Positions 2,718 to 34,890 of a stretch of 40,599 nucleotides of DNA are shown here, piece after piece; position 1 is the stretch's first letter; the number at the start of each line of letters is the position of its first letter. Source of the stretch: Basidiobolus meristosporus CBS 931.73 (lineage: Eukaryota; Fungi; Basidiobolomycota); contig MCFE01000741.1 in NCBI GenBank assembly GCA_002104905.1, positions 1 through 40,599 of the forward strand. The letters are read 5' to 3'. A program made the translations under genes and the position numbers. Under the pieces are notes generated by a model. The model had not been told where the DNA came from, searched no databases, and was given only the letters and a program-made list of their open reading frames with translations.

Positions 2718-3215
2718 ATGCGCTCTACTACCATAGCAGTGATTCTAGGCCTTGTCGCTCTTCAAGTTGCCGTTGCTGCCCCAATCGGCTGTTCTTCTCC
2801 ATGCACTCGCGAGTATAGAAGGGTGCATTATCGCAGCTTACCATGTGCACAGTATGCGAGCGGTTGCTACCAAAACGCTCGAGTTTTGCCTGTCGTTAAG
2901 ACGACGAATGTCCAATCCCCGTTATTGCGCCAGGTTTTCACCACGGTGACCAGAAAGCACGACAACCTGAACATTGCTAACGCCAACAGCAACAAAGGCT
3001 TCAATGTCAAGTATCAAGCAGGGCCCAGTCTCGAACTGGAGGGTAGGGCCAATGCATTAGAATATGCTAAGCAAAAGGGAGCAGAACACTTGGAAGATAG
3101 TTCTTTCTCTCCCTACGTTCTGATGCAGCCCACCCAAGATATACAATACACAGCCCCTGTGGCAGAGATGCAATGCGTAGAAGATTGTCCAGAGCAAAAC
3201 GTTCAATACAATTAG
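2718..3215 (+). CDS. Family B secreted protein, divergent copy B1 (165 aa)
   Basis: Signal-peptide-like MRSTTIAVILGLVALQVAVA-AP, 6 Cys, clearly homologous to the 192-aa B genes of the array; gctatata box upstream. Confidence 0.85.
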   Translation: MRSTTIAVILGLVALQVAVAAPIGCSSPCTREYRRVHYRSLPCAQYASGCYQNARVLPVVKTTNVQSPLLRQVFTTVTRKHDNLNIANANSNKGFNVKYQAGPSLELEGRANALEYAKQKGAEHLEDSSFSPYVLMQPTQDIQYTAPVAEMQCVEDCPEQNVQYN

Positions 3216-15880: not shown

Positions 15881-15889
15881 CCGGGCCTG

Positions 15890-16060
15890 AGTAAGAAGGT
15901 AAAGACAGTGCATCCAGGTATGCCAAATATTTCCACATTGTTATGGATCAGCCTGCGCAATATAGGACATACTCCATAGCAGATAAAGACACCCATGATA
16001 TTGATGGATGCTCTAACCAAGATACACAGTACACAGAGCCCATGAAAGATGCCTTATATG
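15890..16060 (+). pseudogene. Family B 3'-half fragment abutting the CpG-depleted block
   Basis: gcatccaggtatgccaaa...attgttatggatcagcctgcgcaa...ccaagatacacagtacacagagcccatg matches the 3' half of B. Confidence 0.7.
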
Positions 16061-16199
16061 GCAATGAGTCTATGGAATGAACTTAAAGCCATTCAAGTTG
16101 CGTTGATTATATATTTCTTGCTTAATATGTAGTAGCAGAAGTATGATCCATGCCAGCACAAGAATAAGGGTAAGGCTAGAGCAGAATAAAGCGGACCCG

Positions 16200-16730
16200 C
16201 AATATCAGCCAGTAGTACCTTTCTGAGTAGTCAAAATGGATAAGTCAGCTGGCGCAGATAGCTGATACAATATCTGGTCAAGTTCCTGAGGGCTGTAAAA
16301 CAATGGACTCCAGTATTTCGGCATATATGGCATTGTGCGGAGACTGCTCTACTTGCTAATTGCTTACATGAATAGGAGTAGTAGTGAATACGTGATCCAT
16401 TAGCCTATTTATTGTGGCGGGATCACAATAGTATTAAGCCTATTCATATCATTAGCTGTCTCTGTATCTACCTCGACGGTAACATGATGTCTGATCGTCA
16501 TCTTCATTCGAGTCTTGGTTTTCATCCTTGTCGGGAGTAAATAATTGCACATATGCCGACGTAGATGGTTGGAAAGTGCCTGAGCATTCTGTGCGGAGTT
16601 AGTTTAAACATTGTCCAACCAGGGATGACATCGATGGTTCAGTCTCATGGTCTACTTATTGGTTGTCATGTGTAGCTATGGGTGTTGCAAAATACACACC
16701 GAATAGGATGAAGTGCTGTGAACATGAAGG
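16200..16730 (-). pseudogene. Two degenerate family C remnants (~16200-16340 and ~16445-16730)
   Basis: tagctgtctctgtatctac, gtagatggttggaaagtgcctgagcattctgtgcgg and gcagatagctgatacaatatctg match C-family DNA, with deletions. Confidence 0.6.
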
Positions 16731-17184
16731 TCTTGACAGAAGTATTCTTATTGCTTGTCCTACGCTGTTTCTTCCTGATATCAGTTGGTGTAATCTTGTT
16801 TGTATGTGTTGGATAGCCTAAAGAGATAGCGATTTTGTGATGGGATTTATTATGACATCAACAAAAATAAATAAACAATCCTCTTCAATTCTGATCTTGC
16901 TATACCACTAGCAATCTTTGTGAGTGTTTTGGGATATCTTCACCAGCCATCAGTCGATAGTATACTGAGCCAGATTTACGATGCATTGCATCGACCACCT
17001 TAGGTAGGTTTGGCAAAAATGCAACTCTCCATCACTTCATACATCGCCTCTACCCAATTGACCTCTATTGCACCAGATAAATCTTCAAGTCGGAACATTA
17101 ACCGAGGGTTGTGTTGATTTGAAATAGAGTCATAAGAGTAGTGATAGCCAAGGGTATCAATGTGTATTCATCATAAAATTATCA

Positions 17185-17536
17185 CAACTATATGGATGTG
17201 AATGAGGGCAAAGATGAAGGCGAAGGTGAGGACTCGATAGATGACACTTCAACTCAGCCAGAGTCATCCTACAACATGCCAAACTGCAATATAGCCGATA
17301 TGCAGCCAAGACAGGCCTTGTTGGACAGAGTGAACGCTCACTCATCCAGTGATGCTGATGCCCTGTCGAACTCCAATCAGTTTGACCAAGCGCAGGTTAT
17401 CGACCGAACCCTCTATCAGCCTGAGCAGCAACAGCCCTAGATCATCATCACCCAGCCAGCCACCCGTAGCCATGTTGGACGCCAGAAGTACAAGAGATCT
17501 GCGCATAAGTGCTTCAAGAACAGATACATTGAATAA
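17185..17536 (+). pseudogene. Family A pseudogene (5'-truncated, premature stop)
   Basis: No signal peptide. CAG->TAG at 17438-17440 after QQQP; the remaining tail is homologous but carries a deletion. Confidence 0.85.
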
Positions 17537-17863
17537 ATAAATATGACATTTGGCCACCTTAGATTAATATGAAACATCATCAGCCGTGATTCGTGAATTA
17601 CCATACTACAGCTGAAATATCATAAGTATATATGTATATATTGGTGTATGTATCAGTTTATTTATCGTACATTAATCATGTAGACTACGCGATATCAATG
17701 TGATGGAGTCGACGATATTAGAGAGAATGCTGATTTTCAATCTGATAAGTGTGAGTCATCAAAGTTAACTAACTATTGCTACCATCAATTGTAACCATGT
17801 TATAATGGTTCCATGCTATATATTCCCGAGTGTACTTGGCAATGGACTCAGTAGTTCTCAAAG

Positions 17864-18443
17864 ATGCGTGCATTCATTGTATCATTGATCTTGGGCCTTG
17901 CTTCTCTTCAAGCCACCATTGCTGCTCCAGTCCCATGCTCCGAATCATGCAACCGTGAGCATAGAAGAGTCCGTTATCGCAGGTATTCATGCTCGGACCA
18001 AGCGAGCAACTGCTACCAGCAAGTCCAGGTTCAGCCCACTGTTGAAACGCCAAACGTCCAAGTGCCATTGTTGCGTCAGGTGTTCACCACCGTGACCAGA
18101 AAGCATGACAATCTGAACACTGCCAACGCCAACAGTGACAAGAGTCTTCGATGTTCAGTTTCAAGCAGGCCCTAGCCTCGAAGTAGAAGGCTCAGCCAGC
18201 GCATCCGAGTATGCCAAACAGAAGGGTGCTGAACACTTCGAAGATGGCTCTGGTTACCCCATTGTTATGGTTCAGCCTGCACAAGATGAGACATACTCCA
18301 CACCAGTAGTGGACACCCAATGCATCGAAGGATGCTCTGACCAAGATACACAGTACACTGAGCCCATGGTAGATGTTCAATGTGGTGATGACTGTGCTAA
18401 TCAGGACTCACAGTATACTGAGCCCATGGAAGACACTCAATGA
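17864..18443 (+). pseudogene. Family B gene with a single 1-bp insertion (~18148); pseudogene or assembly error
   Basis: ORFs 17864-18175 and 18135-18443 join into a full 192-aa B. The junction reads gagtcttcgatg versus gagtctcgatg or gagtcttgatg in intact copies. Confidence 0.85.
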
Positions 18444-19160
18444 CCCAACGACTGCACTTGAGCCCAAATGCAATAAAGTTCCATTATTCATTTTATTTTT
18501 CGCCTCATACGTGAGCAGAAATATAGCCATTAACAGCATGGGAGCAAAGAGCGTTTGACAAACTTAAAACCAAGCCAATTTCCACACTTCACTCTGATGA
18601 TCCGAAGTCCAGTCACCAATTCAGGAGAAGGGTAGGAAACGTCTTGAAGTACTGCTGAAGGTAGTGAGTGGCTTATTTAATATGCTCAACGAGGGCTTAG
18701 TCAATATGGAGATCGGGCATCCTAGAGTGTATCGCTATGTCAAAAAGTCCAACTATTGCTCACCACCATTACCAGAAAACATGGTATCCTGAGTGCACAT
18801 ATAATATGCACCACTAATTATAATTAAGAAAATTAGCGCTTGATATTCGCAATTCAGAGGGGACAACCAAAATAATTCACACTGTCATGTGAGGAGTTGT
18901 TAGATGTTCTGAGCATAAAGGTTTTAACGTCGAATATGCCTGACCGAAAGGCACTGCGTATCCATATCTATGTTTGGTTATTTCGGTTGATGCTCATTCC
19001 ACTCATCCCTGTAGTCACATCTACGCTGTTTCTTCCTGATATCAGTTGGTGTAATCTTATTTGCAGAAGAAATGTGCGTGTTTTATAGCATGCAGAAATA
19101 GCGATTATATGATAGGATTTATTATGAATGCCAAACCAATGTTTACATGATCCGATTGAG

Positions 19161-19595
19161 TCAAAAGCGGCCGCTGTATCTACTTCTACGGTAGCGTCGT
19201 TGACAACGTTTGCACGATGGCTGATCGTCGTCGTCACTCGAGTCTTGAGTATCATCCTCATCGGGAGTAATTGATTGTACATATGTCGGTGCAGATGGTT
19301 GGTACAATGTTTGATCTACTTGCTGCACTTGCTCATATTGATTCTGGTTGGAAAGTGCCTGAGCGTTCTGTGCAGAATGAGTCTGAGCGTTGTCCAACAA
19401 TGGATAGGCGTTCGGGGACTCTAGTTGATAGTATGTTGGTGCATATGACACTAATGGTTCATTGTCGGCATTGCCGCCAAAGTCCACTGGGACACCCTGG
19501 TCTACTTGCTGGTTGTCATACGTTGCAATGGGCGATGCATAAGATGCACCGAATAGGAATACTAAGGCGGATAGAATGCGGAAAGTGCGTTGCAT
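19161..19595 (-). CDS. Family C secreted protein (144 aa from ATG 19595)
   Basis: Signal-peptide-like MQRTFRILSALVFLFGASYA-SP, N/Q motif, acidic tract, tail CKRCQRRYRRSRYSGRF. The longer ORF-track start is a TTG. Confidence 0.88.
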   Translation of the reverse strand: MQRTFRILSALVFLFGASYASPIATYDNQQVDQGVPVDFGGNADNEPLVSYAPTYYQLESPNAYPLLDNAQTHSAQNAQALSNQNQYEQVQQVDQTLYQPSAPTYVQSITPDEDDTQDSSDDDDQPSCKRCQRRYRRSRYSGRF

Positions 19596-19717
19596 GTTGG
19601 CTCCTGATGACACACTGGAAGGCAAACAGTTGCTTTTATGTATGGTTTGCTAGATTCATCAGCGATCATCAGCAACCAAACCCAGTTTACTAAATTATGA
19701 CAGCAAAGGTGAGTAAA

Positions 19718-19771
19718 GTTAATCAGCATTTCACTTTCATTGCAATGATCAGTGAATAGGTGTTGATTAAC
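19718..19771. promoter_or_regulatory. Conserved 54-bp dyad-symmetric element upstream of C genes
   Basis: GTTAATCA..TTCACT..TCATTG|CAATGA..AGTGAA..TGATTAAC. Variants recur at ~23587, 27500, 31537 and 34190, each ~120-175 bp upstream of a C start. Confidence 0.45.
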
Positions 19772-20359
19772 ACCGTAATCCCGGCGACCAATCACTTCAG
19801 TACATCAAGAAAAATAAATAAACATTCGTCTTCAATTCTGGGCTTGCTATACCACTTTGGAATGACAAACGCGGTAGTGAAGGGACAAACTAAAATGACT
19901 CATACTACGCCTTTTCAAGCTATGGCTTGAAGTGAGCACACAGAAATCGCGTCGTTCTTGCGTAGTTCTCGATTTCATCGTCGAAGGCCACTAAGCTACT
20001 CTGATTATATAGTACCCTGCAGCTATTTTTATGAGTATATTGGGATTATGAACGAATTAACATCTTCACCGGCCATCAGTCGATAGTATACTGCACTAAA
20101 TTTACGATTTAGCATTATGCATTGTATCGACCACCTCAAGTCCGCTTAGCAAAAATGTAACTCGCCATCACTTTGCTGGCTTCATATATCACCTCTATCC
20201 AAGCGATCACTATTGCAGCAGATGAACCTAGAGTTGCGTTGATTTGAGATCGTAGATTCATAGGGATAGTGATTGCTCAGGGTATTAATGTGTACCTATC
20301 ACTACGACTATCAACATGTGGCTTTCCAAATCTTCAATGATGTAGCTACTTTTTCTTTT

Positions 20360-20660
20360 GGCCATCGTTGCTGCTCCAATTCCACGCTCCGAATCATGCA
20401 ATCGCAAGCATAAAAGAGTGCATTGTCGTAGTTCGTCATGCTCCGATCGAGCAAGTAACTGCCACCAGCAAGCCCGAGTTCTGCCAACTGTAGAGACTTC
20501 GAATATCTAAGTATGATTGTACGTTGAAGGATGCGTTGATCAGGATATACAGTACACTGAGCCCATGGAAGTTGCTCAGTTTGGCAATGACTGTGCTAAT
20601 CAGGACTTACTGTATGCTGACTTTATGGACGACACTCAACGTACCGACAACTGCACTTAA
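20360..20660 (+). pseudogene. Internally deleted family B remnant
   Basis: The 5' part (gctccgaatcatgcaatcgc...) is fused to the 3' part (cagtacactgagcccatgg...gactgtgctaatcaggac), with stops. Confidence 0.7.
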
Positions 20661-20877
20661 TTCAATAAATCTCGATTATCCATATCATTTGCTCTTAACG
20701 CCAATCTAACTTGACTGCTAATAGCTAAACCAGGTAGTTAGTTGATGGGCAACAAAAGCAGGACATAGCATGTGAATTCCTGGCCTCAAGTGAGTCAGAT
20801 ACAGGGCGTAGTATAGTAGACTATGCCAAATACCACTATAAAGTGAGCTTACGACTAGTTTTACGCTATTCATCAAA

Positions 20878-21432
20878 ATGCAGCTTACTCTCACTTTACT
20901 CGCTTTGTACTTTGCTTCTATCCATGCATTCCCTGCCACAGAAGATATCTCTTCTCCGGTTAGCTACGGTGACAATTTGTGCGGGGAGCAAGTAAGTCCT
21001 TGCTACCTAGAAACTCAATCGCCTGCAGATGACTATCAGCCGGAAAAGGATGAGGGTGATGGCTATATGGATGAGAATGAGGGTGAAGATGAAGGCGAAG
21101 GTGAAGATTCAATGGATGGCACTACAACTCAGCCAGAATCATCCTACGAGATGCCCAACTTCAATATAGCCGACCTGCAACCAAGACAGGCCTTGTTGGA
21201 CAGAGTGAACGCTCACTCATCCAGTGATGCTGATGCTCTGTCGAACTCTAATCAGTTTGACCAAGCGCAGGTTATCGACCAAACCCTCTATCAGCCTAAG
21301 CAGCAACAGCCGCGGATCATTATCACTCAGCCAGCCGCCCGTAGCTATGGTGGAGGCCAGAAGAAGTACAAGAGGTCGGCACATAAGTACTTCAAGATCA
21401 GATATTTCAGTGGGAATCGATACATTGATTAA
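20878..21432 (+). CDS. Family A secreted protein (184 aa), intact
   Basis: MQLTLTLLALYFASIHA-FP signal, CGEQVSPCY, acidic tract, N/Q motif, cationic aromatic tail. TATAAA ~40 bp upstream, AATAAA at the stop. Confidence 0.9.
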   Translation: MQLTLTLLALYFASIHAFPATEDISSPVSYGDNLCGEQVSPCYLETQSPADDYQPEKDEGDGYMDENEGEDEGEGEDSMDGTTTQPESSYEMPNFNIADLQPRQALLDRVNAHSSSDADALSNSNQFDQAQVIDQTLYQPKQQQPRIIITQPAARSYGGGQKKYKRSAHKYFKIRYFSGNRYID

Positions 21433-21760
21433 ATAAACATTTCATTTGGTCACCTAATATTGATATGAAACATCATCAGCCGTGCTTCGTGAATTACCAC
21501 ACTACTGCTGAAATATCAAAAGCATATGTGTATATATTAGGGTATACATTGGTGTATTTATCAGTGTATTTATCGTGCTGTAACCATATAATCTACGCGA
21601 TATCAATGCGATTGAGCCGATGATGGCAGAGCGAATGCTAATTTTCAATCTGATAAAGTTAACTAACTATTGCTACCATCAACGTTGTAACCATGTTATA
21701 ATGGTTCCCATGCTATGTATTCCCGAGTGTACTTGGCAATGAACTCAGCAGTTCTCAAAG

Positions 21761-22339
21761 ATGCGTACATTCATTGTATCCTTGATCTTGGGCCTTGCCT
21801 CTCTTCAAGCCGCCGTTGCTGCTCCAGCCCCATGCTCCGAATCATGCAACCGTGAGCATAGAAGAGTCCGTTATCGCAGGTATTCATGCTCGGACCAAGC
21901 AAGCAACTGCTACCAGCAAGTCCAGGTTCAGCCCACTGTTGAAACGCCAAACGTCCAAGTGCCATTGTTGCGTCAGGTGTTCACCACCGTGACCAGAAAG
22001 CATGACAATCTGAACACTGCCAACGCCAACAGTGACAAGAGTCTCGATGTTCAGTTTCAAGCAGGCCCTAGCCTCGAAGTAGAAGGTTCAGCTAGCGCAT
22101 CCGAGTATGCCAAACAGAAGGGTGCTGAGCACTCAGACGATGGCTCTGACTACCCTACTGTTATAATTCAGCCTGCACAAGATGAGACATACTCCACACC
22201 AGTAGTGGACACCCAATGCATCGAAGGATGTTCTGACCAAGATACACAGTACACTGAGCCCATGGTAGATGTTCAATGTGGCGATGACTGTGCTAATCAG
22301 GACTCACAGTATACTGAGCCCATGGAAGACACTCAATGA
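21761..22339 (+). CDS. Family B secreted protein (192 aa, 8 Cys), intact
   Basis: Signal peptide, CSESCNREHRRVRYRRYSCSDQASNCY, and 2.5 C-terminal 20-aa acidic repeats. Confidence 0.9.
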   Translation: MRTFIVSLILGLASLQAAVAAPAPCSESCNREHRRVRYRRYSCSDQASNCYQQVQVQPTVETPNVQVPLLRQVFTTVTRKHDNLNTANANSDKSLDVQFQAGPSLEVEGSASASEYAKQKGAEHSDDGSDYPTVIIQPAQDETYSTPVVDTQCIEGCSDQDTQYTEPMVDVQCGDDCANQDSQYTEPMEDTQ

Positions 22340-23029
22340 ACCAACGACTGCACTTGAGCCCAAATCCAATAAAATTTCATTATTCATGTTATTTTTCGCC
22401 TCGTATGGGATAGCAGAAATATAGCCGTTACCATCAAGAAAATAAGGGTATTTTACTAACTCAACACCATGCCAATTTCCGCATTTCCCTCTGATAACCC
22501 GAAGTCCAGTGACCAATCCAGGAAAAGGGTAAGAAACGTCTTGAAGTACTGCTTGAAGGTCATGGGTAGCTTATTCAATAGGTTTTATGTGGGTTTAGTC
22601 AATATGGAAATCGGGTCTCCTTGAGCATATCACCATTCCAAGAAGTTCTAACATGAGTCCGCTATTATAGAGGGTAGGATACATGATAAATAAGGAGAAT
22701 TCGGTGTGTGTCAAATCCAATAGTCTGGTGCTTTTGACTTATACTCACTGGTACCAGCAGAGTGAGAAAATACCAAAGCCCAACTATTGCTTACTACCAT
22801 TACCAGCACATAACTAATATGCACTACAGACAAATGATTCTTATTGTAATTGAGAAAATTGGTGCTTGATCGGCTCTTTCCCTTACATTAATATCTGTTG
22901 ATACTCGCCGTTGTTCCACCCATCCTTGTGGTCATGTCTCTCTTGTAACTTTTTCCTAGTATCAATTGTCAGAAACTGGAGTGATGTCGGTTATATATTA
23001 CATTATCTTATTTATTAAACCTATTCATA

Positions 23030-23465
23030 TCAATAGCTGTCTCTGTATCTACGTCTACGGTAGCGTTGTTGACAACGTTTACACGATGGTTGATCGTCGT
23101 CGTCACTCGAGTCATGAATGTCATCCTCGTCGGGAGTAAACGATTGCACAAATGTCGGTGCAGATGGTTGGTACAATGTTTGATCTACTTGCTGCACCTG
23201 GTCGTACTGATTCTGGTTGGAAAGTGCCTGAGCGTTCTGTGCGGAATTCGTCTTCACATTGTCCAACAATGGATAGGCGTTTGGGGACTCTAGTTGATAG
23301 TATGTTGGTGTATATGGCACTGAATGGCTCATTGTCGGTATTGCCATCAAAGTTCACTGGGATGCCCTGGTCTACTTGCTGGTTGTCATACGTTGCAATG
23401 GGCGATGCATAAGATGCACCGAATAGGAATACTAAGGCGGATAGAATGCGGAAAGTGCGTTGCAT
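23030..23465 (-). pseudogene. Family C gene with a single 1-bp insertion (~23322)
   Basis: ORFs 23121-23495 and 23030-23350 join into a full C. The junction reads cactgaatgg versus cactaatgg in the 19.2-kb copy. Confidence 0.85.
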
Positions 23466-24169
23466 GTTGGCTCTTGATGACACACTGGAAGGCAAACAGT
23501 TACATTTATGTATGGTTTGCTAGATTCATCAGCGATCATCAGCAACCAAACCCAGTTTACTAAATTATGAAGCAAAGGTGAGTAAAGTTAATCAGCATTT
23601 CACTTTCATTGTAATGATCAGTGAATAGGTGTTGATTAACACCGTAATCCAGGCGACCAATCACTTCAGTACAACAAGAAAAATAAATAAACATTCGTCT
23701 TCAATTCTGGGCTTGGCATACCACTTTGGAATGACATACGCGGTAGTGAAGGGACTCGCCAAAATGACTCATACTACGCCTTTTCAAGCTATGGCTTGAA
23801 GTGAGCACACAGGAATGGCTTCATTCTTACGTAGTTCTTGATTTCATAGTTGTAGAACGCTAGGCCACTCTGGTTATATAACAACCTGTAACAATCTTTG
23901 TGAGTGTTATGGGATCATGACTGAATTAATATCTTCACCAGCCTTCAGTCGATAGTATACTGAGTTAAATTTACGATGTAGCATTATGCATTGCACCAAT
24001 TAGCTTAGCTTAGCAAAAATGTAACTCACCTTCACCTCTGTCCAAGTGATCTTCCAGTGTAGCAGACGAATCTTCGAGTTGTGTTGATCTGAAACTGAAG
24101 AGCCGTAAGAATAGTGATTGTTAAGGGTATTAATGTGTATTTATCACAGCACTTCAACTGCTAGTTTCT

Positions 24170-24590
24170 AATGCCCCGACCGAGCAAGTGACTGTTAACA
24201 GCAAGTCCAAGTTCTGCATACTGTTGAAACGTCGAATGTCTAAGTGCCATTATTATGTCAAGTGTTCACCACTGTTACCAAAAAACATGGCAATCTGAGC
24301 ACTGCTAACGCTAATAGGGAAAAGAGTCTTAATGCCAAGCTGGCCCCAGCCTCGAAGTAGAAGGTTCAGCCAGCGCATCCGAGTACGCCAAACTGAAGAG
24401 TGCTGAGCAATCAGACGATGGCTCTAATTTCCCATTGTTGTGACTTAGCCTGCACAAGATGAGACATACACTACACCAGTAGTAGACACCCAATGCGTTG
24501 AAGGATGCGCTGATCAAGATACTGAAAGGAATACAAGAGATCGGCTCAGATATTATAGTGGAAATAGACACAATGAACATCATTTCACTT
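24170..24590 (+). pseudogene. Degenerate family B remnant followed by a family A 3'-end remnant
   Basis: caagtgttcaccactgttaccaaaaaacatggcaatctg and cctcgaagtagaaggttcagccagcgcatccgag match B; agatattatagtggaaatagacac matches the A tail. Confidence 0.7.
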
Positions 24591-24869
24591 GACCACCTTA
24601 TATTAAAATGAAACATCAGCATTGATTCGTAAATCACTATACTACAGCTGGAATATCAAAAGCATATGTGCATTTATTGGTGTATTTATCAGTGTATTTA
24701 TCCTCCTGTAATCATGCAAACTACGCGATGATGGTAGACAGAATGCAAATTTTCAATCTGATCAAAGTTAACTAACTATTGCTGCCATCAATGTTGTAAC
24801 CATATTATACTGGCTCCCATGCTATATATTCCAGAGTGAATTCAGCAATGAACTCAGTAGTTCTTACAG

Positions 24870-25448
24870 ATGCGTACATTCATTGTATCCTTGATCTTGG
24901 GCCTTGCCTCTCTTCAAGCCACCATTGCTGCTCCAGTCCTATGCTCCGAATCATGCAACCGTGAGCATAGAAGAGTCCGTTATCGCAGGTATTCATGCTC
25001 AGACCAAGCAAGCAACTGCTACCAGCAATCCCAGGTTCAGCCCACTGTTGAAACGTCAAACGTTCAAGTGCCACTGTTGCGTCAGGTGTTCACCACCGTG
25101 ACCAGAAAGCATGACAATCTGAACACTGCCAACGCCAACAGTGACAAGAGTCTCGATGCTCAGTTTCAGGCAGGCCCTAGCCTCGAAGTAGAAGGTTCAG
25201 CCAGCGCATCCGAGTACGCCAAACAGAAGGGTGCTGAACACTCAGACGATGGCTCTGGTTACCCCATTGTTATAGTTCAGCCTGCACAAGATGAGACATA
25301 CTCCACACCAGTAGTGGACACCCAATGCATCGAAGGATGCTCTGACCAAGATACACAGTACACTGAGCCCATGGTAGATGTTCAATGTGGCGATGACTGT
25401 GCTAATCAGGACTCACAGTATACTGAGCCCATGGAAGACACTCAATGA
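24870..25448 (+). CDS. Family B secreted protein (192 aa), intact
   Basis: Near-identical to 21761-22339. Confidence 0.9.
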   Translation: MRTFIVSLILGLASLQATIAAPVLCSESCNREHRRVRYRRYSCSDQASNCYQQSQVQPTVETSNVQVPLLRQVFTTVTRKHDNLNTANANSDKSLDAQFQAGPSLEVEGSASASEYAKQKGAEHSDDGSGYPIVIVQPAQDETYSTPVVDTQCIEGCSDQDTQYTEPMVDVQCGDDCANQDSQYTEPMEDTQ

Positions 25449-26095
25449 ACCAACGACTGCACTTGAGCCCAAATCCAATAAAGTTTCATTATTCATGTTA
25501 TTTTTCGTCTCATATGTGATAGCAGAAATATAGCCATTACCAGCATGGGAACAAGAGCATTTGACAAACTCAACACCACGCCAATTTCTTCCCTCTGATG
25601 ACCCGAAGTCCAGCTACCAATTCAGGAGAAGAGTAAGAAGCTGGTTAAGCTTGGCTATGCACGTGTTTAAGTACTGCTCGGAGGTAGTAGGATGGCTTAT
25701 TTAATAAGCTCAACCCGGACCTAGTCAATATGGAGATAGGGCATCCTAGAGTGTATCGCTATCTCAAGAAGTCCAACTATTACTCACTACCATGAGCGCA
25801 CATATAACATGCACCACAGACGAGTGATTCTTATTATAATTGAGAAATTTAGCGCTTGATCGGCTCTTTCCCTTACTTCAATCTCTGTTGATACTCGCCA
25901 TTATTCCACCCATCCCTGTGGGCACATCTCTTGTGTATCATATTTGAAAGCTTGTTTACAGAAGAATTGGGTGTACCTGATAGCCTACATGGACAGGGAC
26001 ACTGGAGTAATATCGATTGTATGATACATTAACCTATTTATTATGCTGGGATCACCATAGTCATAACATGTAGAAAGGCCAACAACCTGTTCTCA

Positions 26096-26532
26096 TCAAT
26101 AGCTGTCTCTGTATCTACGTCTACGGTGGCGTCGTTGACACTGTCTACACGCTGGCTGATTGCCATCATCACCAGAGTCTTGGTCTTCATCCTCGTCGGG
26201 AGCAAATGATTGCACATACGTCGACGCAGATGGTTGGTACAATGTCTGATCTATTTGCTGCACCTGGCCATACTGATTCCGGTTGGGAAGTGCCTGAGCA
26301 TTCTGTACGGAGTTAGTTTGAATATTGTTCAACAAGGGATAAGTAATTAGGGACTCTAGCTGGTAATCTGCCAGCGCATATGATATTAATGGTTCAGTCT
26401 CATAGTCCACTTGGACACCCTGGTCTACTTATTGATTGCCATATGTAACAATAGGCGATGCATAGGATACACCGAATAGGAATACCAATGTTGGACAAAA
26501 TGCGTGGATAAAATGCGGAAATAAGGTTGCAT
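26096..26532 (-). pseudogene. Family C pseudogene
   Basis: ATG at 26532, altered signal region, CAA->TAA stop in the YGNQ*VD segment. The downstream part remains open (26096-26410). Confidence 0.8.
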
Positions 26533-26943
26533 ATTGGCACTTAGTTACACACTGGAATACAAAAAGTTGCTCTTGTTTTTGTCAACAATCATCAGCAGCC
26601 GAAGCTCAGTTGATAGCTATTCTATGTGGCCAATCATCAATAAAAACAATCCACAGCCAATTGAACCTATGTATCATCGATCTACCCACTTCATTACCTA
26701 TACCATCATCCATTTATTGCTCACCACGACTGCTTGCCATTATTCATTATTGTTCGCAAATTGGAGAGAACAAAACCAAAATGTTTCATGTGAGGAGTCA
26801 TTGCTCATTCCACACATCCCTGTGGTCACGTCTCCTCTGATGTCAGTTGGTGTAATGTGTGTGTTGGATAGCTTACAGAAGTAGCGATTATTTTATAGGA
26901 TTTATTATGAATGCCAAACTAGTGTTATCATGACCCGATTGAA

Positions 26944-27378
26944 TCAAAAGCGGCCGCTGTATCTACTTCTACGGTAGCGTCGTTGACAACGTTTACACGA
27001 TGGCTGATCGTCGTCGTCACTCGAGTCTTCAGTGTCATCCTCGTCGGGAGTAATTGATTGCACATATGTCGGTGCAGATGGTTGGTACAATGTCTGATCT
27101 ACTTGCTGCACCTGGTCGTACTGATTCTGGTTGGAAAGTGCCTGAGCGTTCTGTGCAGAATGAGTCTGAGCGTTGTCCAACAATGGATAGGTGTCTGAGG
27201 ACTCTAGTTGATAGTATATTGGAGTGTATGACATTGACGGTTCATTGTCGGTGTTGCCACCAAAGTCCGCTGGGATACCCTGGTCTATTTGCTGGTTGTC
27301 ATACGTTGCAATGGGTGATGCATAAGATGCACCGAATAGGAATACTAAGGCGGATAGAATGCGGAAAGTGCGTTGCAT
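26944..27378 (-). CDS. Family C secreted protein (144 aa), intact
   Basis: Near-identical to 19161-19595; ATG at 27378. Confidence 0.88.
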   Translation of the reverse strand: MQRTFRILSALVFLFGASYASPIATYDNQQIDQGIPADFGGNTDNEPSMSYTPIYYQLESSDTYPLLDNAQTHSAQNAQALSNQNQYDQVQQVDQTLYQPSAPTYVQSITPDEDDTEDSSDDDDQPSCKRCQRRYRRSRYSGRF

Positions 27379-28129
27379 GTTGGCTCTTGATGACGCAGTG
27401 GAAGGCAAACAGTTGCATTTATGTATGGTTTGCTAGATTCATCAGCGATCATCAGCAACCAAACCCAGTTTACTAAATTATGAAGCAGAGGGGAGTAAAG
27501 TTAATCACCATTTCATTTTCATTGTAATGATCGATGAGTAAAAGCTGATTAACACCGTAATCCAAGCGACCAATCACTTCAATAAATAAACACTCTTCAA
27601 TTCTGCGCTGCCGCACGATTTGGTAATGACATTAGCGGTTGTGAAGAGACAAACCAAAATGACTCATACTACGCCTTTTCAAGCTATGGCTTGAGGTGAG
27701 CTCACAGGAATGGCTTCGTTCTTACGTAGTTCTTGATTTCATAGTCATAGAATTGTAACCTGCTCGGGTTATATAGCGACCTGTAGCTATTTTAATGCGT
27801 ATTATGGGATTATGAATGAATTCATATTTTACCAGTCATCATTCGGTAGCATACTGAGCTAGATTAACGATTTAGCATCAAGCGTTGCATCAACCACCAC
27901 AAGATGATACAGCGCCTCTATCCAAGGGATCTCTATTGCCGCAGATGAACTTCAAGTCGAAACATGAACCTGGATTTGTGTTGATTTCAAATTGTAGATT
28001 CATAGGAATAGTGGTTGCTAAGGGTATTAGTGTGAATATATCACTGCGACTATTAACATATGGCTTTCCAAATGCTCAATGACGTAGCTACTTTTTCTTT
28101 TGGCCGTCGTTGCTGCTTCAATACACTGT

Positions 28130-28230
28130 GCCCACGGAATATGCTCAGTGTTGTAATGATTGTGCTTAGCAGGACTCACCGACTGCAGACTTTATGGATG
28201 ACACTTAATGTACCGATAAGTGCACTTAAT
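28130..28230 (+). pseudogene. Short family B 3' remnant
   Basis: atgattgtgcttagcaggactcac...gactttatggatgacact matches the B 3' end and the remnant at ~20600. Confidence 0.5.
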
Positions 28231-28416
28231 TCAATGAATCTCGATTATCCATATGAGCCCATATCTTCACAAGTACTTAGTGGATAGTCAACCACAGCTG
28301 GACATGGCATGTGAATTCATGGCTTCAAGTGAGTCAGATATAGGATGCAGTATAATAGACTACGCCAAATACCACTATAAAGTAAGCTTACGACTGGTTT
28401 TACGCTATTCATCAAA

Positions 28417-28971
28417 ATGCAGCTTACTCTCGCTTTACTCGCTTTGTACTTTGCTTCTATCCATGCATTTCCCGCCACAGAAGATACCTCTTCTCAGGTT
28501 AGCAGCGACAACAACTTGTGCGGGGAGCAAATAAGTCCTTGCTACCAAGAAACTCAATCGCCTGCATACGACTATCAGCCGGAACAGGATGAGGGTGATA
28601 GCTATATGGATGAGAATGAGGGCGAAGATGAAGGCGAAGGTGCGGACTCAATGGATGGCACTACAACTCAGCCAGAGTCATCCTACAACATGCCCAGCTT
28701 CAATATAGCCGATATGCAACCAAGACAGGCCTTGTTGGACAGAGTGAACGCTCACTCATCCAGTGATGCTGATGCTCTGTCGAACTCCAATCAGTTTGAC
28801 CAAGCGCAGGTTGTCGACCAAATCCTTTATCAGCCTAAGCAGCAACAGCCGCGGATCATCATCACTCAGCCAGCCGCCCGTAGCTATGGCGGAGGCCAGA
28901 AGAAGTACAAGAGGTCGGCACATAGGTACTTCAAGATCAGATATTTCAGTGGGAACAGATACATTGAATAA
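28417..28971 (+). CDS. Family A secreted protein (184 aa), intact
   Basis: Near-identical to 20878-21432; TATAAA upstream at ~28376. Confidence 0.9.
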   Translation: MQLTLALLALYFASIHAFPATEDTSSQVSSDNNLCGEQISPCYQETQSPAYDYQPEQDEGDSYMDENEGEDEGEGADSMDGTTTQPESSYNMPSFNIADMQPRQALLDRVNAHSSSDADALSNSNQFDQAQVVDQILYQPKQQQPRIIITQPAARSYGGGQKKYKRSAHRYFKIRYFSGNRYIE

Positions 28972-29290
28972 ATAAAAATGTCATTTGGCCACCTAATATT
29001 GATATGAAACATCATCAGCCGTAATTCGTGAATTACCACACCAAAGCTGAAATTTTATCAAAAGCATATGCGTATATATTGGTGTATTTACCAGTGTATT
29101 TGTCGTGTTGTAACCAAATAAAGTACGCGATATCAATGCGATTGAGCCGATGATGGTAGAGCGAATACTGCTTTTCAATCTGATAAAGTTAACTAACTAT
29201 TGCTACCATCAATGTTGTAACCATGTTATAATGGTTCCCATGCTATATATTCCCGAGGGAATTCAGCAATGAACTCAGTAGTTCTCAAAG

Positions 29291-29869
29291 ATGCGTGCAT
29301 TCATTGTATCATTGATCTTGGGCCTTGCCTCTCTTCAAGCCACCATTTCTGCTCCAGTCCCATGCTCCGAATCATGCAACCGTGAGCATAGAAGAGTCCG
29401 TTATCGCAGGTATTCATGCTCGGACCAAGCAAGCAACTGCTACCAGCAAGTGCAGGTTCAGCCCACTGTTGAAACGCCAAACGTCCAAGTGCCATTGTTG
29501 CGTCAGGTGTTCACCACCGTGACCAGAAAGCATGACAATCTGAACACTGCCAACGCCAACAGTGACAAGAGTCTTGATGTTCAGTTTCAAGCAGGCCCTA
29601 GTCTCGAAGTAGAAGGTTCAGCCAGCGCATCCGAGTACGCCAAACAGAAGGATGCTGAACACTCAGACGATGGCTCTGGTTACCCCATTGTTATGGTTCA
29701 GCCTACACAAGATGAGACATACTCCACACCAGTAGTGGACACCCAATGCATCGAAGGATGCTCTGGCCAAGATGCACAGTACACTGAGCCCATGGAAGAT
29801 GTTCAATGTGGCGACAACTGTGCTGATCAGGACTCACAGTATACTGAGCCCATGGAAGACACTCAATGA
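29291..29869 (+). CDS. Family B secreted protein (192 aa), intact
   Basis: Near-identical to the other array B copies. Confidence 0.9.
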   Translation: MRAFIVSLILGLASLQATISAPVPCSESCNREHRRVRYRRYSCSDQASNCYQQVQVQPTVETPNVQVPLLRQVFTTVTRKHDNLNTANANSDKSLDVQFQAGPSLEVEGSASASEYAKQKDAEHSDDGSGYPIVMVQPTQDETYSTPVVDTQCIEGCSGQDAQYTEPMEDVQCGDNCADQDSQYTEPMEDTQ

Positions 29870-30179
29870 ACCAACGACTGCACTTAAGTCCAAATCCAAT
29901 AAAGTTACATTATTCATTTTATTTTTCGTTTCATATGTGATAGCAGAGATATAGCCATTACAAAATATGGGAACAAGAGCGTTTGACAAACTCAACACCA
30001 CGCCAATTTCCATACTTCCCTCCGATGACCCGAAGTCCAGCCACCAATTCAGGAGAGGGGTAAGAAACTGGTAAAGCTTGGCTATGCACGTCTTTAAGTC
30101 CTGCTTGGAGGTAGTGGGTGGCTCAATGATAAGCTCAACAAGGGCTTAGTCAATATGGAGATCGGACATCCTAGAGTGT

Positions 30180-30494
30180 GGCTGACCGTCATCGTCACTC
30201 AAGTCTTGGTCTTCATCCTCGTCGGGAGTAAATGGTTACACATATGTCGACGTAGATGGTTGGAAAGTGCCTGAGCATTCTGTGCGGAGTTAGTTTAAAC
30301 ATTGTCCAACAACGATAGGTGACTGGGAACTCTAGCTGATAATCTGTCGGTGCATATGGAATCGATGGTTCAGTCTCATAGTCCACTTGGACACCCTGGT
30401 CTACTTATTGGTTGCCATATGTAACAATAGGCGATGCACAGGATACACCAAATAGGAATACCAAGGTGAATAAAATGCGGAAATTACGTTGCAT
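30180..30494 (-). pseudogene. Family C pseudogene
   Basis: ATG at 30494, the same CAA->TAA stop as the 26.1-kb copy, internal deletions, 3' end lost. Confidence 0.78.
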
Positions 30495-30980
30495 ATTGGC
30501 ACTTAGTTACACACTGGAATACAAAAAGTTGCTTTTGTTTTATCAACAATCATCAGCGGCCGAAGCTCAGCTAAGTTGATAGCTATTCTAGGTGGCCAAT
30601 CATCAATAAAAACAATCCACAGCCAATTTAACTCATGTATCATCGATCTACGTATTTCATTAGCTATACCATCATCCATTTATTGCTATCCACGATTGCT
30701 CACCACTATTTCATTTTAGTAGTTTGTTCAATATTGCTCGCAAATTGGAGGGTACAAAACCAAAATGTTTCACACTATTGTTTAAGGGTTCATTGCCAGA
30801 ATGTTCATGATGCTCATTCCACTCATCCCAGTGGTCACGTCTCCGCTGTTTCTTCCGGATATCAATTGTTATAATCTTGTTTGTAGAATAAATGTGTGTG
30901 TTTTATAGCTTGCAGAAATAGCGATTATATGATGGGATTTATTATGAATGCCAAACTAGTGTTTACATGATCTGATTGAA

Positions 30981-31415
30981 TCAAGAGCTGCCTCTGTATC
31001 CACGTCTACGGTAGCGTCGTTGACAACGTTTGCACGATGGCTGATTGTCGTCGTCACTCGAGTCTTCAGTGTCATCCTCGTCGGGAGTATTTGATTGCAC
31101 ATATGTCGGTGCAGATGGTTGGTACAATGTCTGATCTACTTGCTGCACTTGCTCAAATTGATTCTGGTTGGAAAGTGCCTCAGCGTTCTGTGCAGAATTA
31201 GTCTGAGCGTTGTCCAACAATGGATAGGTGTCTGGAGACTCTAGTTGATAGTATGTTGGTGTGTATGACATCAATGGATCATTGTCGGCATTGTCACCAA
31301 AATCCACCGGGATGCCCTGATCTACTTGCTGGTTGTCATACGTTGCAATGGGCGATGCATAAGATGCACCGAATAGGAATACTAAAACGGATAGAATGTG
31401 GAAAGTGCGTTGCAT
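30981..31415 (-). CDS. Family C secreted protein (144 aa), intact
   Basis: ATG at 31415; tail variant CKRCQRRYRRRGYRGSS. Confidence 0.88.
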   Translation of the reverse strand: MQRTFHILSVLVFLFGASYASPIATYDNQQVDQGIPVDFGDNADNDPLMSYTPTYYQLESPDTYPLLDNAQTNSAQNAEALSNQNQFEQVQQVDQTLYQPSAPTYVQSNTPDEDDTEDSSDDDNQPSCKRCQRRYRRRGYRGSS

Positions 31416-31685
31416 GTTGGCTCTTGATGACACACTGGAAGGCAAACAGTTGCTTTTATGTATGGTTTGCTAGATCCATCAACGATCATCAGCAACCAAA
31501 CCCAGTTTACTAAATTATGAAGCAAAGGTGAGTAAAGTTAATCAGCATTTCACTTTCATTGCAATGATCAGTGAGTAAGAGTTGATTAACACCGTAATTC
31601 AAGCGACCAATCACTTCAGCACATCAAGAAAAATAAATCAACATTTCTCTTCAATTCTGGGCGTGCTATACCACTTTGGTATGAC

Positions 31686-32059
31686 AGGACGAGGGTGATC
31701 ACTATATGGATGAGAATGAGGGCGAAGGTGAGGACTCAATGGATGACACTTCAACTCAGCCAGAGTCATCCTACAACATGCCAAACTTCAATGTAGCCGA
31801 CATGCAACCCAGAAAGGTATTGTTGGACAGAGTGAACGTTCACTCGTTCAGTGATGCTGATGCCCTGTCGAACTCTAATCAGTTTGACCAAGCGCAGGTT
31901 GTCGACCAAATCCTCTATCAGCCTAAGCAGCAACAGCCCCAGATCATCATCACTCAGCCAGCCACCCGTGGCTACGGTGGAGGCCAGAAGAAGTACAAGA
32001 GGTCTGCATATAAGTACTTCAAGATCAGATATTTCAGTGGGAATCGATACATTGATTAA
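31686..32059 (+). pseudogene. 5'-truncated family A copy (open frame, no signal peptide)
   Basis: Begins mid-gene, fused directly to the C-upstream spacer (ccactttggtatgac|aggacgagggtgat). The motif and tail are intact. Confidence 0.8.
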
Positions 32060-32711
32060 ATAAATATATCATTAGGCTACCTAATATTAATATGAAACAT
32101 CATCAGCCGTAATCCGTGAATTACCACACTACAGCTGAAATATCAAAAGCATATGTGTATACATTGGTGTATTTATCAGTGTATTTATCGTGCTGTAACC
32201 ATATAATCTACGCGATATCAATGCGATTGAGCCGATGATGGTAGAGCGAATGCTGCTTTTCAATCTGATAAAGTGTGAGTTCATCAAAGTTAATGAACTA
32301 TTGCTACCATCACTGTTGTAACCATGTGATAATGGTTCCCATGTTATATGTTCCCGAGTGAATTTAGCAATGAACACCAGCAGAGCGATAAAATACGAAA
32401 TCCTAACTATTGCTCACTACCATTACCAGCACATAACTAATATGCATTCTTATTGAAATTTTGAAAATTGGTGCTTGTTCGGCTCTTTCCCTTACCTCAA
32501 TCTCTGCCGATACTCGCCGTTGTTCCACCCATCCCTTTGGTCATATCTCTTTTGTGGCTTTTTCCTGGTGTTTATTGTCAGAAACTGGTTCGCGGAAGAA
32601 TTGCGTGCATTTGATAGCTTACATCAATAGGGAAACTAGAGTGATGTCGATTTTACAATACATTTTCTTATTTATTATACTGGGATCACAATAGTATTAA
32701 ACCTATTCTTA

Positions 32712-33069
32712 TCAATAGCTGTCTCTGTATCTACCACTACGGTGTGCACGATGGCTGATCGTCGTCGTCACTTGAGTCTTGGATCTCATCCTCGCCTGGG
32801 GTAAATGATTGCACATATGTTGACGTAGATGGTTGGAAAGTGCCTGAGCATTTAGTGCGGAATCAGTTTGAACATTGACCAACAAGGGATAGGTGACTGG
32901 GGACTCCAGCTGGTAGTCAGTCGGTGCATATGGCATCGATGGTTCAGTCCCCATAGTCCACCGGGACACCTAGGTCTACTTGTTGGCTACCATATGTAGC
33001 AATGGACGATGCACAGGATACACCGAATAGGAATACCAAGGTGGATAAGATGCGGAAATTACGTTGCAT
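32712..33069 (-). pseudogene. Family C pseudogene
   Basis: ATG at 33069, a frameshift after VPVDY, and a deletion within the N/Q motif. Confidence 0.8.
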
Positions 33070-33678
33070 GTTACACACTGTAATGTAAACAGTTGCTTTA
33101 TGTTTGATGGACAAGATTTATCAACGATCATCAGCAATTGAAGCTCAGTTGAGTGAAGCTAATCCTATGTTGATAGCTATTCTACGTGGCCAATCATCAA
33201 AGGACAAAAATTAGGATAAAAACAATGCACAGCCAATTGAACCTATGTACCATCGATCTACATTGCTTATATCATCATCTATCTGTTGCTCACCACAACT
33301 ACTCACCACTATTCCATTTTAGTAATTTAACCATTTATAGAAACCAAAATGATTCACACTATCATGTGAGGAGTCGTTACCAGAATGCTGGTACCTATTG
33401 AATGTTCATTATTGTTCTCTATCATGATGCTCTGAACATATATGGCTGACAGAAGAGTGCTGCGTATTCCTATCTATACTTGATTGTTTCTGTTGATCCT
33501 CATTCCACTCATCCCTGTGGTCACGTCTCCGCTATTTCTTTCTGATGTCAGTTGGTATAATCTTGCTTGCAGAAGAAATATGCGTTCGATAGCTTGCAGA
33601 AATAGCAATTATTTGATAGGTTTATTATGAATGCCAAACTAGTGTTTACACGATCCGATTTCATCAAAAGCCGCCTCT

Positions 33679-34068
33679 CTATCCACGTCTACGTTTACAC
33701 GATGGCTGATTGTCGTCGTCACTCGAGTCTTGAGTGTCATCCTCATCGGGAGTAAATGATGGCGCATATGTCGACGCAGATGGTTGGTACAATGTCTGAT
33801 CTACTTGCTGCACTTGCTCATATTGATTCTGGTTGGAAAGTGCCTCAGCATTCTGTGCAGAATTAGTCTGAGCGTTGTCCAACAATGGATAGGCGTCTGG
33901 GGACTCTAGTTGATAGTATGTTGATGTATATGGCATTAATGGTTCACTGTCGAAGTCCACCGGGATGCCCTGGTCTACTTGCTGGTTGTCATACGTTGCA
34001 ATGGGCGTTGCATAAGATGCACCGAATAGGAATACTAAGACGGATAGAATGCGGAAAGTGCGTTACAT
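33679..34068 (-). pseudogene. Family C pseudogene
   Basis: ATG at 34068 is followed immediately by TAA (CAA in intact copies), with further deletions and a shortened tail CKRRRG. Confidence 0.82.
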
Positions 34069-34549
34069 GTTGGCTCTTGATGACACACCGGAAGGCAAAC
34101 AGTTGCTTTTATGTATGGTTTGCTAGATTCATCAGCGATCATCAGCAACCAAACCCAGTTTACTAAATTATGAAGCAAAGGTGAGTAAAGTTAATCAGCA
34201 TTTCACTTTCATTGTAATGATCAGTGAATAGGGGTTGATTAAACCGTAATCCAGGCGACCAGTCACTTCAGTACATGAAGAAAAGTAAATAAACATTTCT
34301 CTTCAATTCCACTTTGGAATGGCATTTGCGGTTGTGAAGAGACAAACCACAATGATTCATACTATGGCTTGAGGTGAGCACACAGGAATGGCGTCGTTCT
34401 TACGTAGTTCTTAATTCCATTGCCGTAGAATGCTAAGCTACTCTCGTGATAAAGAAGCCTGTAGTTACTTTGTGGGATTACGGATGAATTAATATCTTTA
34501 CTGCCATCATTCGATAGTATACTGAGCTATATTTAGGGTTCTGTCTTTG

Positions 34550-34890
34550 ACCAAGTACCAACGTTGCGTCAAGTGTTCACCACCATGACCAGAAAGCATG
34601 GCTATCTGAACACTATTAGCACCATTAGTGACAAAAGTCTTAGTGTTAACTTCAAGCAGGCCCAACCTCGAAGTAGAAGGTTCAGCCAGTGCATCTGAGT
34701 ACGTCAAACTGAAGGGGGCTGAACACTCTGATTACCCCATTATTATGATTCAGCCCGCACAAGAGGAGATCTATTCCACACCGGAAGTTGAAGGGAGCCC
34801 TTATCCTATGTGGCGATGATTGTGCTAATCAGGACTCGAAGTATACTTATCCTGTAGTGACACTGAATGTACCGACGACTGCACTTAATT
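34550..34890 (+). pseudogene. Degenerate family B remnant at the array end
   Basis: gcgtcaagtgttcaccaccatgaccagaaagcatg, cctcgaagtagaaggttcagccagtgcatctgag and gattgtgctaatcaggactc match B. Confidence 0.72.

Follow-up and report, generated by a model that had tools for sequence, protein, structure and literature searches.

Basidiobolus meristosporus CBS 931.73 carries, on a 40.6-kb scaffold that was analysed over its entire length (the window), genes for three small proteins, A, B and C, that recur side by side, which raises the question of what these proteins are and whether they act together. All three match B. meristosporus proteins at 99–100% identity. Searching the window with A, B and C (tblastn, combined with a list of ORFs) revealed about five tandem units of the order A(+) B(+) C(−) between 15.9 and 34.9 kb, with 3.1–4.4 kb between unit starts and 84–93% DNA identity among units. 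This array holds two intact copies of A, three of B and three of C, which bears out the original prediction of a cassette amplified about five times with at least two intact copies of each gene. The older A–B pair that had been noted at 1.8–3.2 kb is also present with both genes intact (A0, 53% identical to A and probably starting at the second Met, like its paralog P0011; B0, 61% identical to B). A further 15 or more copies in the window are frameshifted, truncated or diverged. Copy by copy, it reads as follows:

1811..2356, plus strand: A0, intact older gene of A type with an ORF of 181 aa, its Q/N core and basic tail conserved
2718..3215, plus strand: B0, older intact B-type gene, 165 aa
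5336..5802, plus strand: B-type copy with a frame change (two tblastn HSPs in different frames)
8444..8848, plus strand: B-type copy, C-terminal part decayed and truncated (tblastn, ORF list)
15880..16068, plus strand: B fragment, residues 103–176 only (tblastn)
16464..16724, minus strand: diverged C-like remnant, 33% identity (tblastn)
17186..17530, plus strand: A copy without its 5′ part, residues 62–177 (tblastn)
17864..18440, plus strand: B copy with one frame change (tblastn, ORF list)
19161..19595, minus strand: intact C, 144 aa (ORF, tblastn, alignment, dN/dS)
20346..20639, plus strand: B fragments, residues 12–69 and 154–192 (tblastn)
20878..21432, plus strand: intact A, 184 aa (ORF, alignment, dN/dS, charge analysis)
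21761..22339, plus strand: intact B, 192 aa (ORF, alignment, dN/dS)
23066..23465, minus strand: C copy with a frame change (tblastn)
24166..24526, plus strand: B remnant with two frame changes (tblastn)
24870..25448, plus strand: intact B, 192 aa (ORF, tblastn, dN/dS)
26150..26488, minus strand: diverged C copy, 65% identity, residues 11–127 (tblastn)
26944..27378, minus strand: intact C, 144 aa from ATG (ORF, alignment, dN/dS, charge analysis)
28417..28971, plus strand: intact A, 184 aa (ORF, tblastn, dN/dS)
29291..29869, plus strand: intact B, 192 aa (ORF, tblastn, dN/dS)
30256..30494, minus strand: C fragment, residues 1–84, with a frame change (tblastn)
30981..31415, minus strand: intact C, 144 aa (ORF, tblastn, dN/dS)
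31685..32059, plus strand: A copy without its 5′ part, residues 57–184 (tblastn, ORF list)
32746..33069, minus strand: diverged C-like copy, 45% identity (tblastn)
33694..34068, minus strand: C copy, 81% identity, residues 1–129, without a full-length ORF (tblastn, ORF list)
34552..34856, plus strand: B remnant with frame changes (tblastn)

The B remnant at 24166..24526 has a counterpart at the equivalent position in the L001 array. Telomere repeats were absent from the 40.6-kb window, and neither a transposase nor terminal repeats were found inside the cassette unit; a remnant of a Ty3-type gag lies at 39316–39897. The genes also cluster elsewhere. Arrays of the same cassette are present on further scaffolds, at least two in number (MCFE01000512.1, MCFE01000112.1), and MCFE01000731.1 bears diverged cassettes; the A-B-C order is retained in cassettes that have diverged to 52–71% protein identity. 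A block on another scaffold is 96% identical to the present array over 6 kb, compared with 84–93% among the units themselves; the array arose first and was block-copied to other scaffolds later.

The A, B and C genes are real and functional, because all three are under purifying selection. Among copies, dN/dS was 0.30 (A), 0.34 (B) and 0.26 (C), falling to 0.12–0.19 in the conserved cores; the termini ranged from 0.29 (A tail, nearly invariant between species) over 0.67 (acidic end of B) to 0.96 (C tail). Four sequencing runs covering the locus yielded fragmented contigs over genes and spacers alike and look like DNA, and two tiny runs gave one contig each, located on the 5′ half of B, too little to interpret.

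The claim that the proteins contain no known domain was upheld, since the proteins scanned gave no Pfam match above cut-off and profile searches against the PDB returned no match. Myticin-prepro (PF10690) scored 18.3 bits with B0 and 14–14.5 bits with P0040 and P0008, against a gathering cut-off of 28.5, and the Pfam match to ProSAAS likewise stayed below cut-off. The UniRef names “CBM1 domain”, “SCP domain” and “C2H2-type” were discarded, as they had no Pfam backing in the members scanned (P0008, P0040, P0047 and P0021, none of them a “C2H2-type” member). Outside B. meristosporus and B. ranarum, an HMM profile search of 1.84e9 proteins recovered a single protein, repeat-rich and from a phytoplasma (E 5e-8); by this search, the family is restricted to the genus Basidiobolus. 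Between the two species the cores are conserved, overall identity being 36–47%. Small secreted proteins (SSPs) have been defined as shorter than 300 aa, with a signal peptide, without a catalytic domain and of restricted taxonomic range (PMC9391592), and the A/B/C family falls within this definition. We class it as a new, undescribed family of an already known kind, that of lineage-specific, amplified small secreted proteins.

Export of A, B and C is very probable, judging from their sequences and models. By inspection, the N-termini are signal-peptide-like, with a hydrophobic core and small residues at −3/−1 (IHA|F, AVA|A and SYA|S), and AF2 places a helix at residues 2–18, the signal region; the signal peptides of the original prediction are supported to this extent. 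A GPI-type hydrophobic C-terminus was not seen by inspection. Behind the signal, A consists of a Cx6C module, an acidic block (net −22), a Q/N core and a basic Lys/Arg/Tyr/Phe tail (net +8). B consists of a CX3C-loop-CX6C box (13-aa Arg/Tyr loop, net +3), the B core and an acidic end (net −17) with a twin motif, CX3C-X15-CX3C, which is its sole internal repeat and has no dibasic sites. C consists of a variable acidic part, a Q/N core, an Asp-rich block (net −9) and a CxxC-containing Arg/Tyr tail (net +8). Compared with shuffled sequences, charge segregation was marked in A (z 3.6) and C (z 7.0) and not significant in B (z 1.6). A 26-residue stretch of the Q/N core is ∼38% Gln plus Asn by direct count (14–19% in the whole proteins). 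In two AF2 models, one of them of a natural fusion, mean pLDDT was 50.9 and 44.6, and the signal helix was the sole element of note, a predicted disorder that may partly come from the shallow alignments (17–21 sequences). Neither beta structure nor a fold was predicted, no strands were seen in either model, and the cores of the natural fusion did not pack against each other; annotation by fold was dropped with models this poor (pLDDT 51 and 45). CX3C-Xn-CX3C is also the motif of alpha-hairpinin-type peptides, in which the twin motif forms a disulfide-stapled helical hairpin; AF2 predicts no helices in the corresponding region of B, in a model that is poor.

The three proteins had been described as different from each other and as built from shared, reordered modules. 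The latter holds only in part. Two modules are shared: the Q/N core between A and C (hhalign E 6e-14) and the Cx6C module following the signal peptide between A and B (alignment), the N-termini of A and B both aligning with one Cys stretch of B. ranarum P0031. Between the B core and the Q/N core, in contrast, no relationship was detectable, and the basic boxes are alike in composition only. An internal duplication linking the two cores was rejected (E 0.2 in hhalign on clean core alignments), earlier inter-family profile matches being artefacts of the chimeric alignment rows P0058 and P0019. Nor are the three types unrelated families; they appear to be paralogous, domain-split derivatives of one type. 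In B. ranarum, P0031 has matches to three regions, namely the B core (E 8e-21), the N-terminus of A (E 3e-4) and the core plus tail of A (E 4e-28), whereas P0084 matches C (E 5e-12) and also carries a B core; P0080, P0083 and P0084 are uninterrupted ORFs in that species. One fused form consists of signal, Cx6C, B core, variable linker, Q/N core and A-type basic tail, the other of signal, B core, linker, Q/N core, acidic tract and C-type Cys/Arg tail. Of these parts, A retained the Cx6C, Q/N core and tail, B the Cx6C and B core, and C the Q/N core and CxxC/Arg tail. Because the modules are fused in single ORFs in B. ranarum, A, B and C seem to have been split from one longer type of protein, which persists there in fused form. 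Candidate fusions in B. meristosporus were rejected: P0008 (B–A) is a spliced gene model without a continuous ORF, and the A–B models P0010, P0020, P0021 and P0045 have the appearance of neighbouring genes, merged or decayed. The splitting of one type supports a functional link between B and the A/C modules. Co-amplification alone is little evidence of joint function, because tandem duplication copies whatever the unit contains.

What the proteins do may best be explained, tentatively and in preference to a self-assembling coat or adhesive, by charge-masked pro-forms of cationic surface-binding peptides. A, B and C would be secreted with their strongly acidic block (net −9 to −22) neutralising the aromatic-rich Arg/Lys/Tyr box (about +8 in A and C, +3 in B); outside the cell, the box would be unmasked or cut free and might bind a polyanionic surface, for example the envelope of a competing gut microbe. 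The conserved B and Q/N cores would serve handling, sorting or partner binding, and gene amplification would raise the dose. In several members, cysteines bracket or precede the box, as CX3C-loop-CX6C (B), as CxxC (C) or, in the tails of some B. ranarum proteins, as a closed Cys loop. The Cys-bracketed cationic loops that lie next to acidic blocks in B and several relatives agree no less well with peptide pro-forms than with a coat, adhesive or amyloid. The pairing of an anionic block with a cationic peptide (−22/+8 in A, −9/+8 in C and −17/+3 in B) is that of cationic antimicrobial-peptide precursors, a class defined by design and not by homology. Precursors of cationic, often disulfide-closed host-defence peptides (defensin, myticin, frog-skin) share with the family the signal peptide, an acidic block beside a cationic Arg/Lys/aromatic box, box-bracketing cysteines (in B and several B. 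ranarum relatives), tandem gene amplification and, in C, conservation of the prepro part while the cationic end changes fast, as is also known of frog-skin peptide and conotoxin precursors. They differ in that A, B and C are not members by sequence (Myticin-prepro, 18.3 versus 28.5 bits), in that the processing site is not conserved between species and in that the long, non-cationic Q/N and B cores have no counterpart. KR or RR precedes the A tail in aligned B. meristosporus copies, and the site is not kept in B. ranarum (KK or RK, as in KKYKKF and KKYRKY; none in P0031). Further points against the precursor reading are the constraint on the A tail (dN/dS 0.29), unlike many arms-race peptides, the lack of significant charge segregation in B and the sub-threshold Myticin-prepro and ProSAAS scores; that reading also accounts only loosely for constraint being strongest in the non-cationic cores. 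Among 1461 fungal strains, B. meristosporus has most Kex2-processed repeat proteins (KEPs; PMC7329392), which resemble the family in being fungal, in having a signal peptide and in the KR/RR site of A and C; the A/B/C proteins, however, have no tandem core peptides between Kex2 sites, their modules being single-copy in alignments.

That A, B and C are instead co-expressed subunits of a self-assembling material, be it a wall or spore coat, a capilliconidial adhesive, a complex coacervate or a functional amyloid, is rather unlikely. In that case the Q/N and B cores would be interfaces between subunits brought together by their opposite charge blocks, and the amplification would serve to provide protein in bulk. 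Signal peptides with predicted disorder, the block-polyampholyte layout with Tyr/Lys/Arg-rich boxes, a Gln/Asn-rich core that is the most constrained portion, natural fusions of B core and Q/N core that imply joint action, a cassette order that persists in diverged copies and a high copy number over several scaffolds all agree with assembly. So do the ESM Atlas feature neighbours, secreted disordered matrix proteins (casein, MEPE and ODAPH), which are leads only, as all score below 0.9. Coacervate adhesives and matrix proteins (sandcastle-worm cement, mussel foot proteins, SCPP) are likewise secreted and disordered, with segregated charge blocks and Tyr/Lys/Arg-rich boxes, the likeness of Atlas features to casein, MEPE and ODAPH being weak; they have no sequence relation to A, B and C, which lack low-complexity repeats and any sign of DOPA or phosphoserine modification, with no modifying enzyme nearby. 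Moreover, the fusion model shows neither beta structure nor core–core packing, the proteins are small and without the internal repeats typical of structural secretions, a GPI-type C-terminus is missing, and any adjacent paralogs would be co-amplified. The coat, adhesive or amyloid of the original prediction has no specific pointer. Somewhat less probable still is that A, B and C are interacting pieces of a split ancestral secreted protein that build an extracellular material (a charge-driven condensate or Q/N-core fibril, as adhesive, coat or gut-stage matrix); if so, they would represent a new class of fungal extracellular material, and the B. ranarum fusions would be its single-chain form.

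About as unlikely as co-expressed subunits is the absence of any joint function, in which case adjacent paralogous small secreted proteins (effector-like or for niche interaction) would act separately, and the cassette and its arrays would be products of segmental duplication and unequal crossing-over, in a genome rich in duplications. Consistent with this, all three derive from one family, the array was block-copied at 96% identity, many copies are decaying, and the A-type genes of B. ranarum form a separate array without B or C. Zygomycete genomes are also rich in lineage-specific SSP families without a Pfam match (PMC9391592). Tandem, lineage-specific fungal SSP clusters resemble the family in protein length (<300 aa), signal peptide, absence of Pfam domains, confinement to one genus, tandem and segmental amplification and many pseudogenes. 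They differ in that the unit here comprises three complementary split-domain paralogs, not one repeated gene, with fused full-length forms in the sister species, and in that Basidiobolus is a gut commensal and saprotroph with no host target known. Separate action is also at odds with an A-B-C order retained at 52–71% protein identity, with modules fused in single ORFs and with purifying selection on all three types. That the ORFs are non-gene parts of a repetitive or mobile element, open by chance, is highly improbable despite the dispersed multi-copy sequence, the gag remnant and the many broken copies, and we regard it as refuted because of selection (dN/dS 0.26–0.34 overall and 0.12–0.19 in cores) and cores conserved across species at 36–47% overall identity; signal peptides are intact, and the unit lacks a transposase and terminal repeats.

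Amphibians and reptiles harbour Basidiobolus as a gut symbiont, and in humans it is an occasional pathogen; the B. meristosporus genome is unusually rich in amplified secreted-peptide genes. Dozens of copies, selection and absence from the other organisms searched make it probable that the A/B/C family is tied to the special life cycle of Basidiobolus or to competition with gut microbes. Its split and fused forms provide a natural handle on the question of which modules cooperate. Should the cationic boxes be active peptides, the family would be a new source of cationic peptides; if the proteins assemble, it would be a new extracellular material.

Basidiobolus meristosporus CBS 931.73 carries A, B and C in the window, a complete scaffold of 40,599 bp with low coding density (G+C 38–45%), and all three match proteins of that strain at 99–100% identity. 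When the three proteins were used as tblastn queries against the window, about five A(+) B(+) C(-) units were found at 15.9–34.9 kb, spaced 3.1–4.4 kb apart and 84–93% identical to one another in DNA. Intact genes in the array number two for A, three for B and three for C; at least 15 copies in the window are truncated, frameshifted or diverged. The copy map, in unit order, spacing and intact copies, bears out the original prediction of a three-gene cassette amplified as a unit. The window also contains the following features.

Features of the window outside the cassette array
1811–3215: older A-B pair, intact
5.3–5.8 kb and 8.4–8.8 kb: two further B copies, decayed
6401–7486, (-): short-chain dehydrogenase/reductase gene, intact (adh_short, E 2e-30)
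34977–35894, (-): 305-aa ORF just past the array, no Pfam match
39316–39897, (+): Ty3-type retrotransposon gag remnant at the right scaffold end (Retrotrans_gag, E 3e-12)

The dehydrogenase/reductase gene is the sole conventional enzyme gene of the scaffold, and no link to the cassette was seen. Between the old and the young cassettes (9000–16000), the sequence is AT-richer (38–40% G+C), nearly without long ORFs and without matches to the A, B or C families. Around the gag remnant (37–40 kb), GC skew is strongly negative. GCR1_C-domain proteins are among the Atlas feature neighbours of the 305-aa ORF, with scores below 0.8 and as a lead only; the ORF might be a DNA-binding or Crypton-derived remnant.

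Arrays of A-B-C cassettes are also present on MCFE01000512.1 (L001) and MCFE01000112.1 (L009), and diverged cassettes, with protein identities of 71%, 61% and 52%, keep the order A(+) B(+) C(-) on MCFE01000731.1 (L007), so that the genes are clustered elsewhere too, as the original prediction required. Positions 1–6003 of L001 are collinear with 20732–26748 of the window (96.2% identity) and contain the identical broken B remnant, which indicates that the array formed first and that the block was copied afterwards. In Basidiobolus ranarum, eight A-type genes lie head-to-tail on JASJQH010007471.1 (L002) with no B or C genes between them; amplification acted there on another unit than in B. meristosporus. 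Public sequencing runs covering the locus look like DNA: their short contigs fall on spacers as well as genes, with a word depth of ∼1,100 in unique spacers and far higher where many near-identical copies pile up. In each of two very small runs of the same sample (0.5 and 1.1 million letters; library type unrecorded), a single contig covers the 5′ half of a B gene (29243–29647); either many copies or high abundance could account for this.

The A, B and C genes are real. Among intact copies from the window and one second array (5 A, 7 B, 8 C), dN/dS (NG86) was 0.30 for A, 0.34 for B and 0.26 for C; the conserved cores were the most constrained (0.12–0.19), and the values reached 0.67 in the acidic C-terminal third of B and 0.96 in the last 18 residues of C. 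The same intron-free ORFs are called as genes in the public annotation. Inspection reveals evident signal peptides, and the signal helix is the sole confident helix in the AF2 models. An origin of these ORFs as repeat or junk is excluded, being contradicted both by this selection and by conservation across species.

The three proteins share modules in part. A and C have in common a Q/N-rich core of 38 residues (58% identity; hhalign E 6e-14), and an alignment places a Cx6C module directly after the signal peptide of both A and B. The B core has no detectable relationship to the Q/N core and is a separate conserved element. The key result came from B. ranarum, in which uninterrupted ORFs carry B core, Q/N core and tail in one chain.

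Layouts of single-chain relatives
P0080, P0083, P0031: signal, Cx6C, B core, variable Met/His-rich linker, Q/N core, A-type tail
P0084, P0058, P0088, L003:863-1642(-): signal, B core, linker, Q/N core, acidic tract, C-type Cys/Arg tail

P0031 matches B of the window (E 8e-21) as well as the N-terminus (3e-4) and the C-terminal half (4e-28) of A, and P0084 matches C (E 5e-12). Together with the single-chain ORFs, these matches indicate that A, B and C are domain-split relatives of two full-length types; in this two-species comparison, which has no outgroup, the change may have been a fusion or a fission. Because B. ranarum also has A-only genes (the L002 array) and a B-only gene (P0052) beside the fused ORFs, both layouts are older than the split between the two species. 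In some relatives (L003:5900-6985, P0080; L008:10001-10621, P0081; P0083), the variable linker is strikingly rich in Met and His: for example, KPKKHHTWE and MEMPxMEKT units are repeated, and runs of the MDMDMNM type occur, in the place of the Asp/Glu runs that A of the window has; metal binding by these linkers is a possibility.

Modelled by AF2 from family alignments, the natural fusion P0084 had a mean pLDDT of 50.9 and B one of 44.6. Past the signal helix, the models showed no secondary structure except a low-confidence helix of 6 residues in B, and the two cores of P0084 did not pack together; with alignments this shallow, the result is consistent with, but not proof of, disorder. Each mature protein consists of separate charge blocks. 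In A, an acidic block (−22) precedes a tail of +8; in C, an Asp tract (−9) stands immediately ahead of a CxxC/Arg/Tyr tail (+8); and in B, a segment of CX3C, a 13-residue Arg/Tyr loop and CX6C (+3) is accompanied by an acidic CX3C-X15-CX3C end (−17). Compared with shuffles, charge segregation was higher for A (z 3.6) and C (z 7.0), not clearly so for B (z 1.6).

By analogy to host-defence peptide precursors, we favour the reading that A, B and C would be charge-masked pro-forms, each with a cationic box, rich in aromatic residues and partly closed by Cys, that binds polyanionic surfaces. This fits the protein layout, the KR/RR site that B. meristosporus has ahead of the A tail, the rapid change of the C tail adjoining a conserved prepro part, and the record KEP count of the B. 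meristosporus strain (PMC7329392). Three points speak against it: B. ranarum does not keep the dibasic site, the A tails of the two species hardly differ, and the most constrained parts are the cores rather than the tails. A serious rival is the original proposal that the proteins assemble into a coat, adhesive or amyloid: the module fusions argue for joint action of B core and Q/N core, and block polyampholytes that carry Tyr/Lys/Arg boxes can self-associate, but nothing specific speaks for such an assembly, and AF2 predicted no beta structure. On a third reading, A, B and C may be independent paralogs, each acting alone, that were amplified by duplication.

In word-based searches covering 5.8 billion proteins, relatives came only from B. 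meristosporus and B. ranarum. They formed about 21+10 clusters in the case of A, 27+2 in that of B and 19 in that of C; a single C cluster had 12 members spread over 8 scaffolds. When a profile built on the conserved Q/N core and the tail was run against all 1.84 billion cluster representatives, it matched only Basidiobolus proteins except for one repeat-rich phytoplasma protein (E 5e-8), which was taken as spurious. No Pfam family scored above cut-off for A, B, C or the scanned relatives, and no relative was found in the PDB. We found no publication describing the family; the relevant papers handle Basidiobolus secreted proteins in bulk only (PMC9391592; PMC7329392). A, B and C thus belong to a previously undescribed family of small secreted proteins, amplified and confined to Basidiobolus. 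Its kind is ordinary, its membership is new, and its split and fused architecture is informative.
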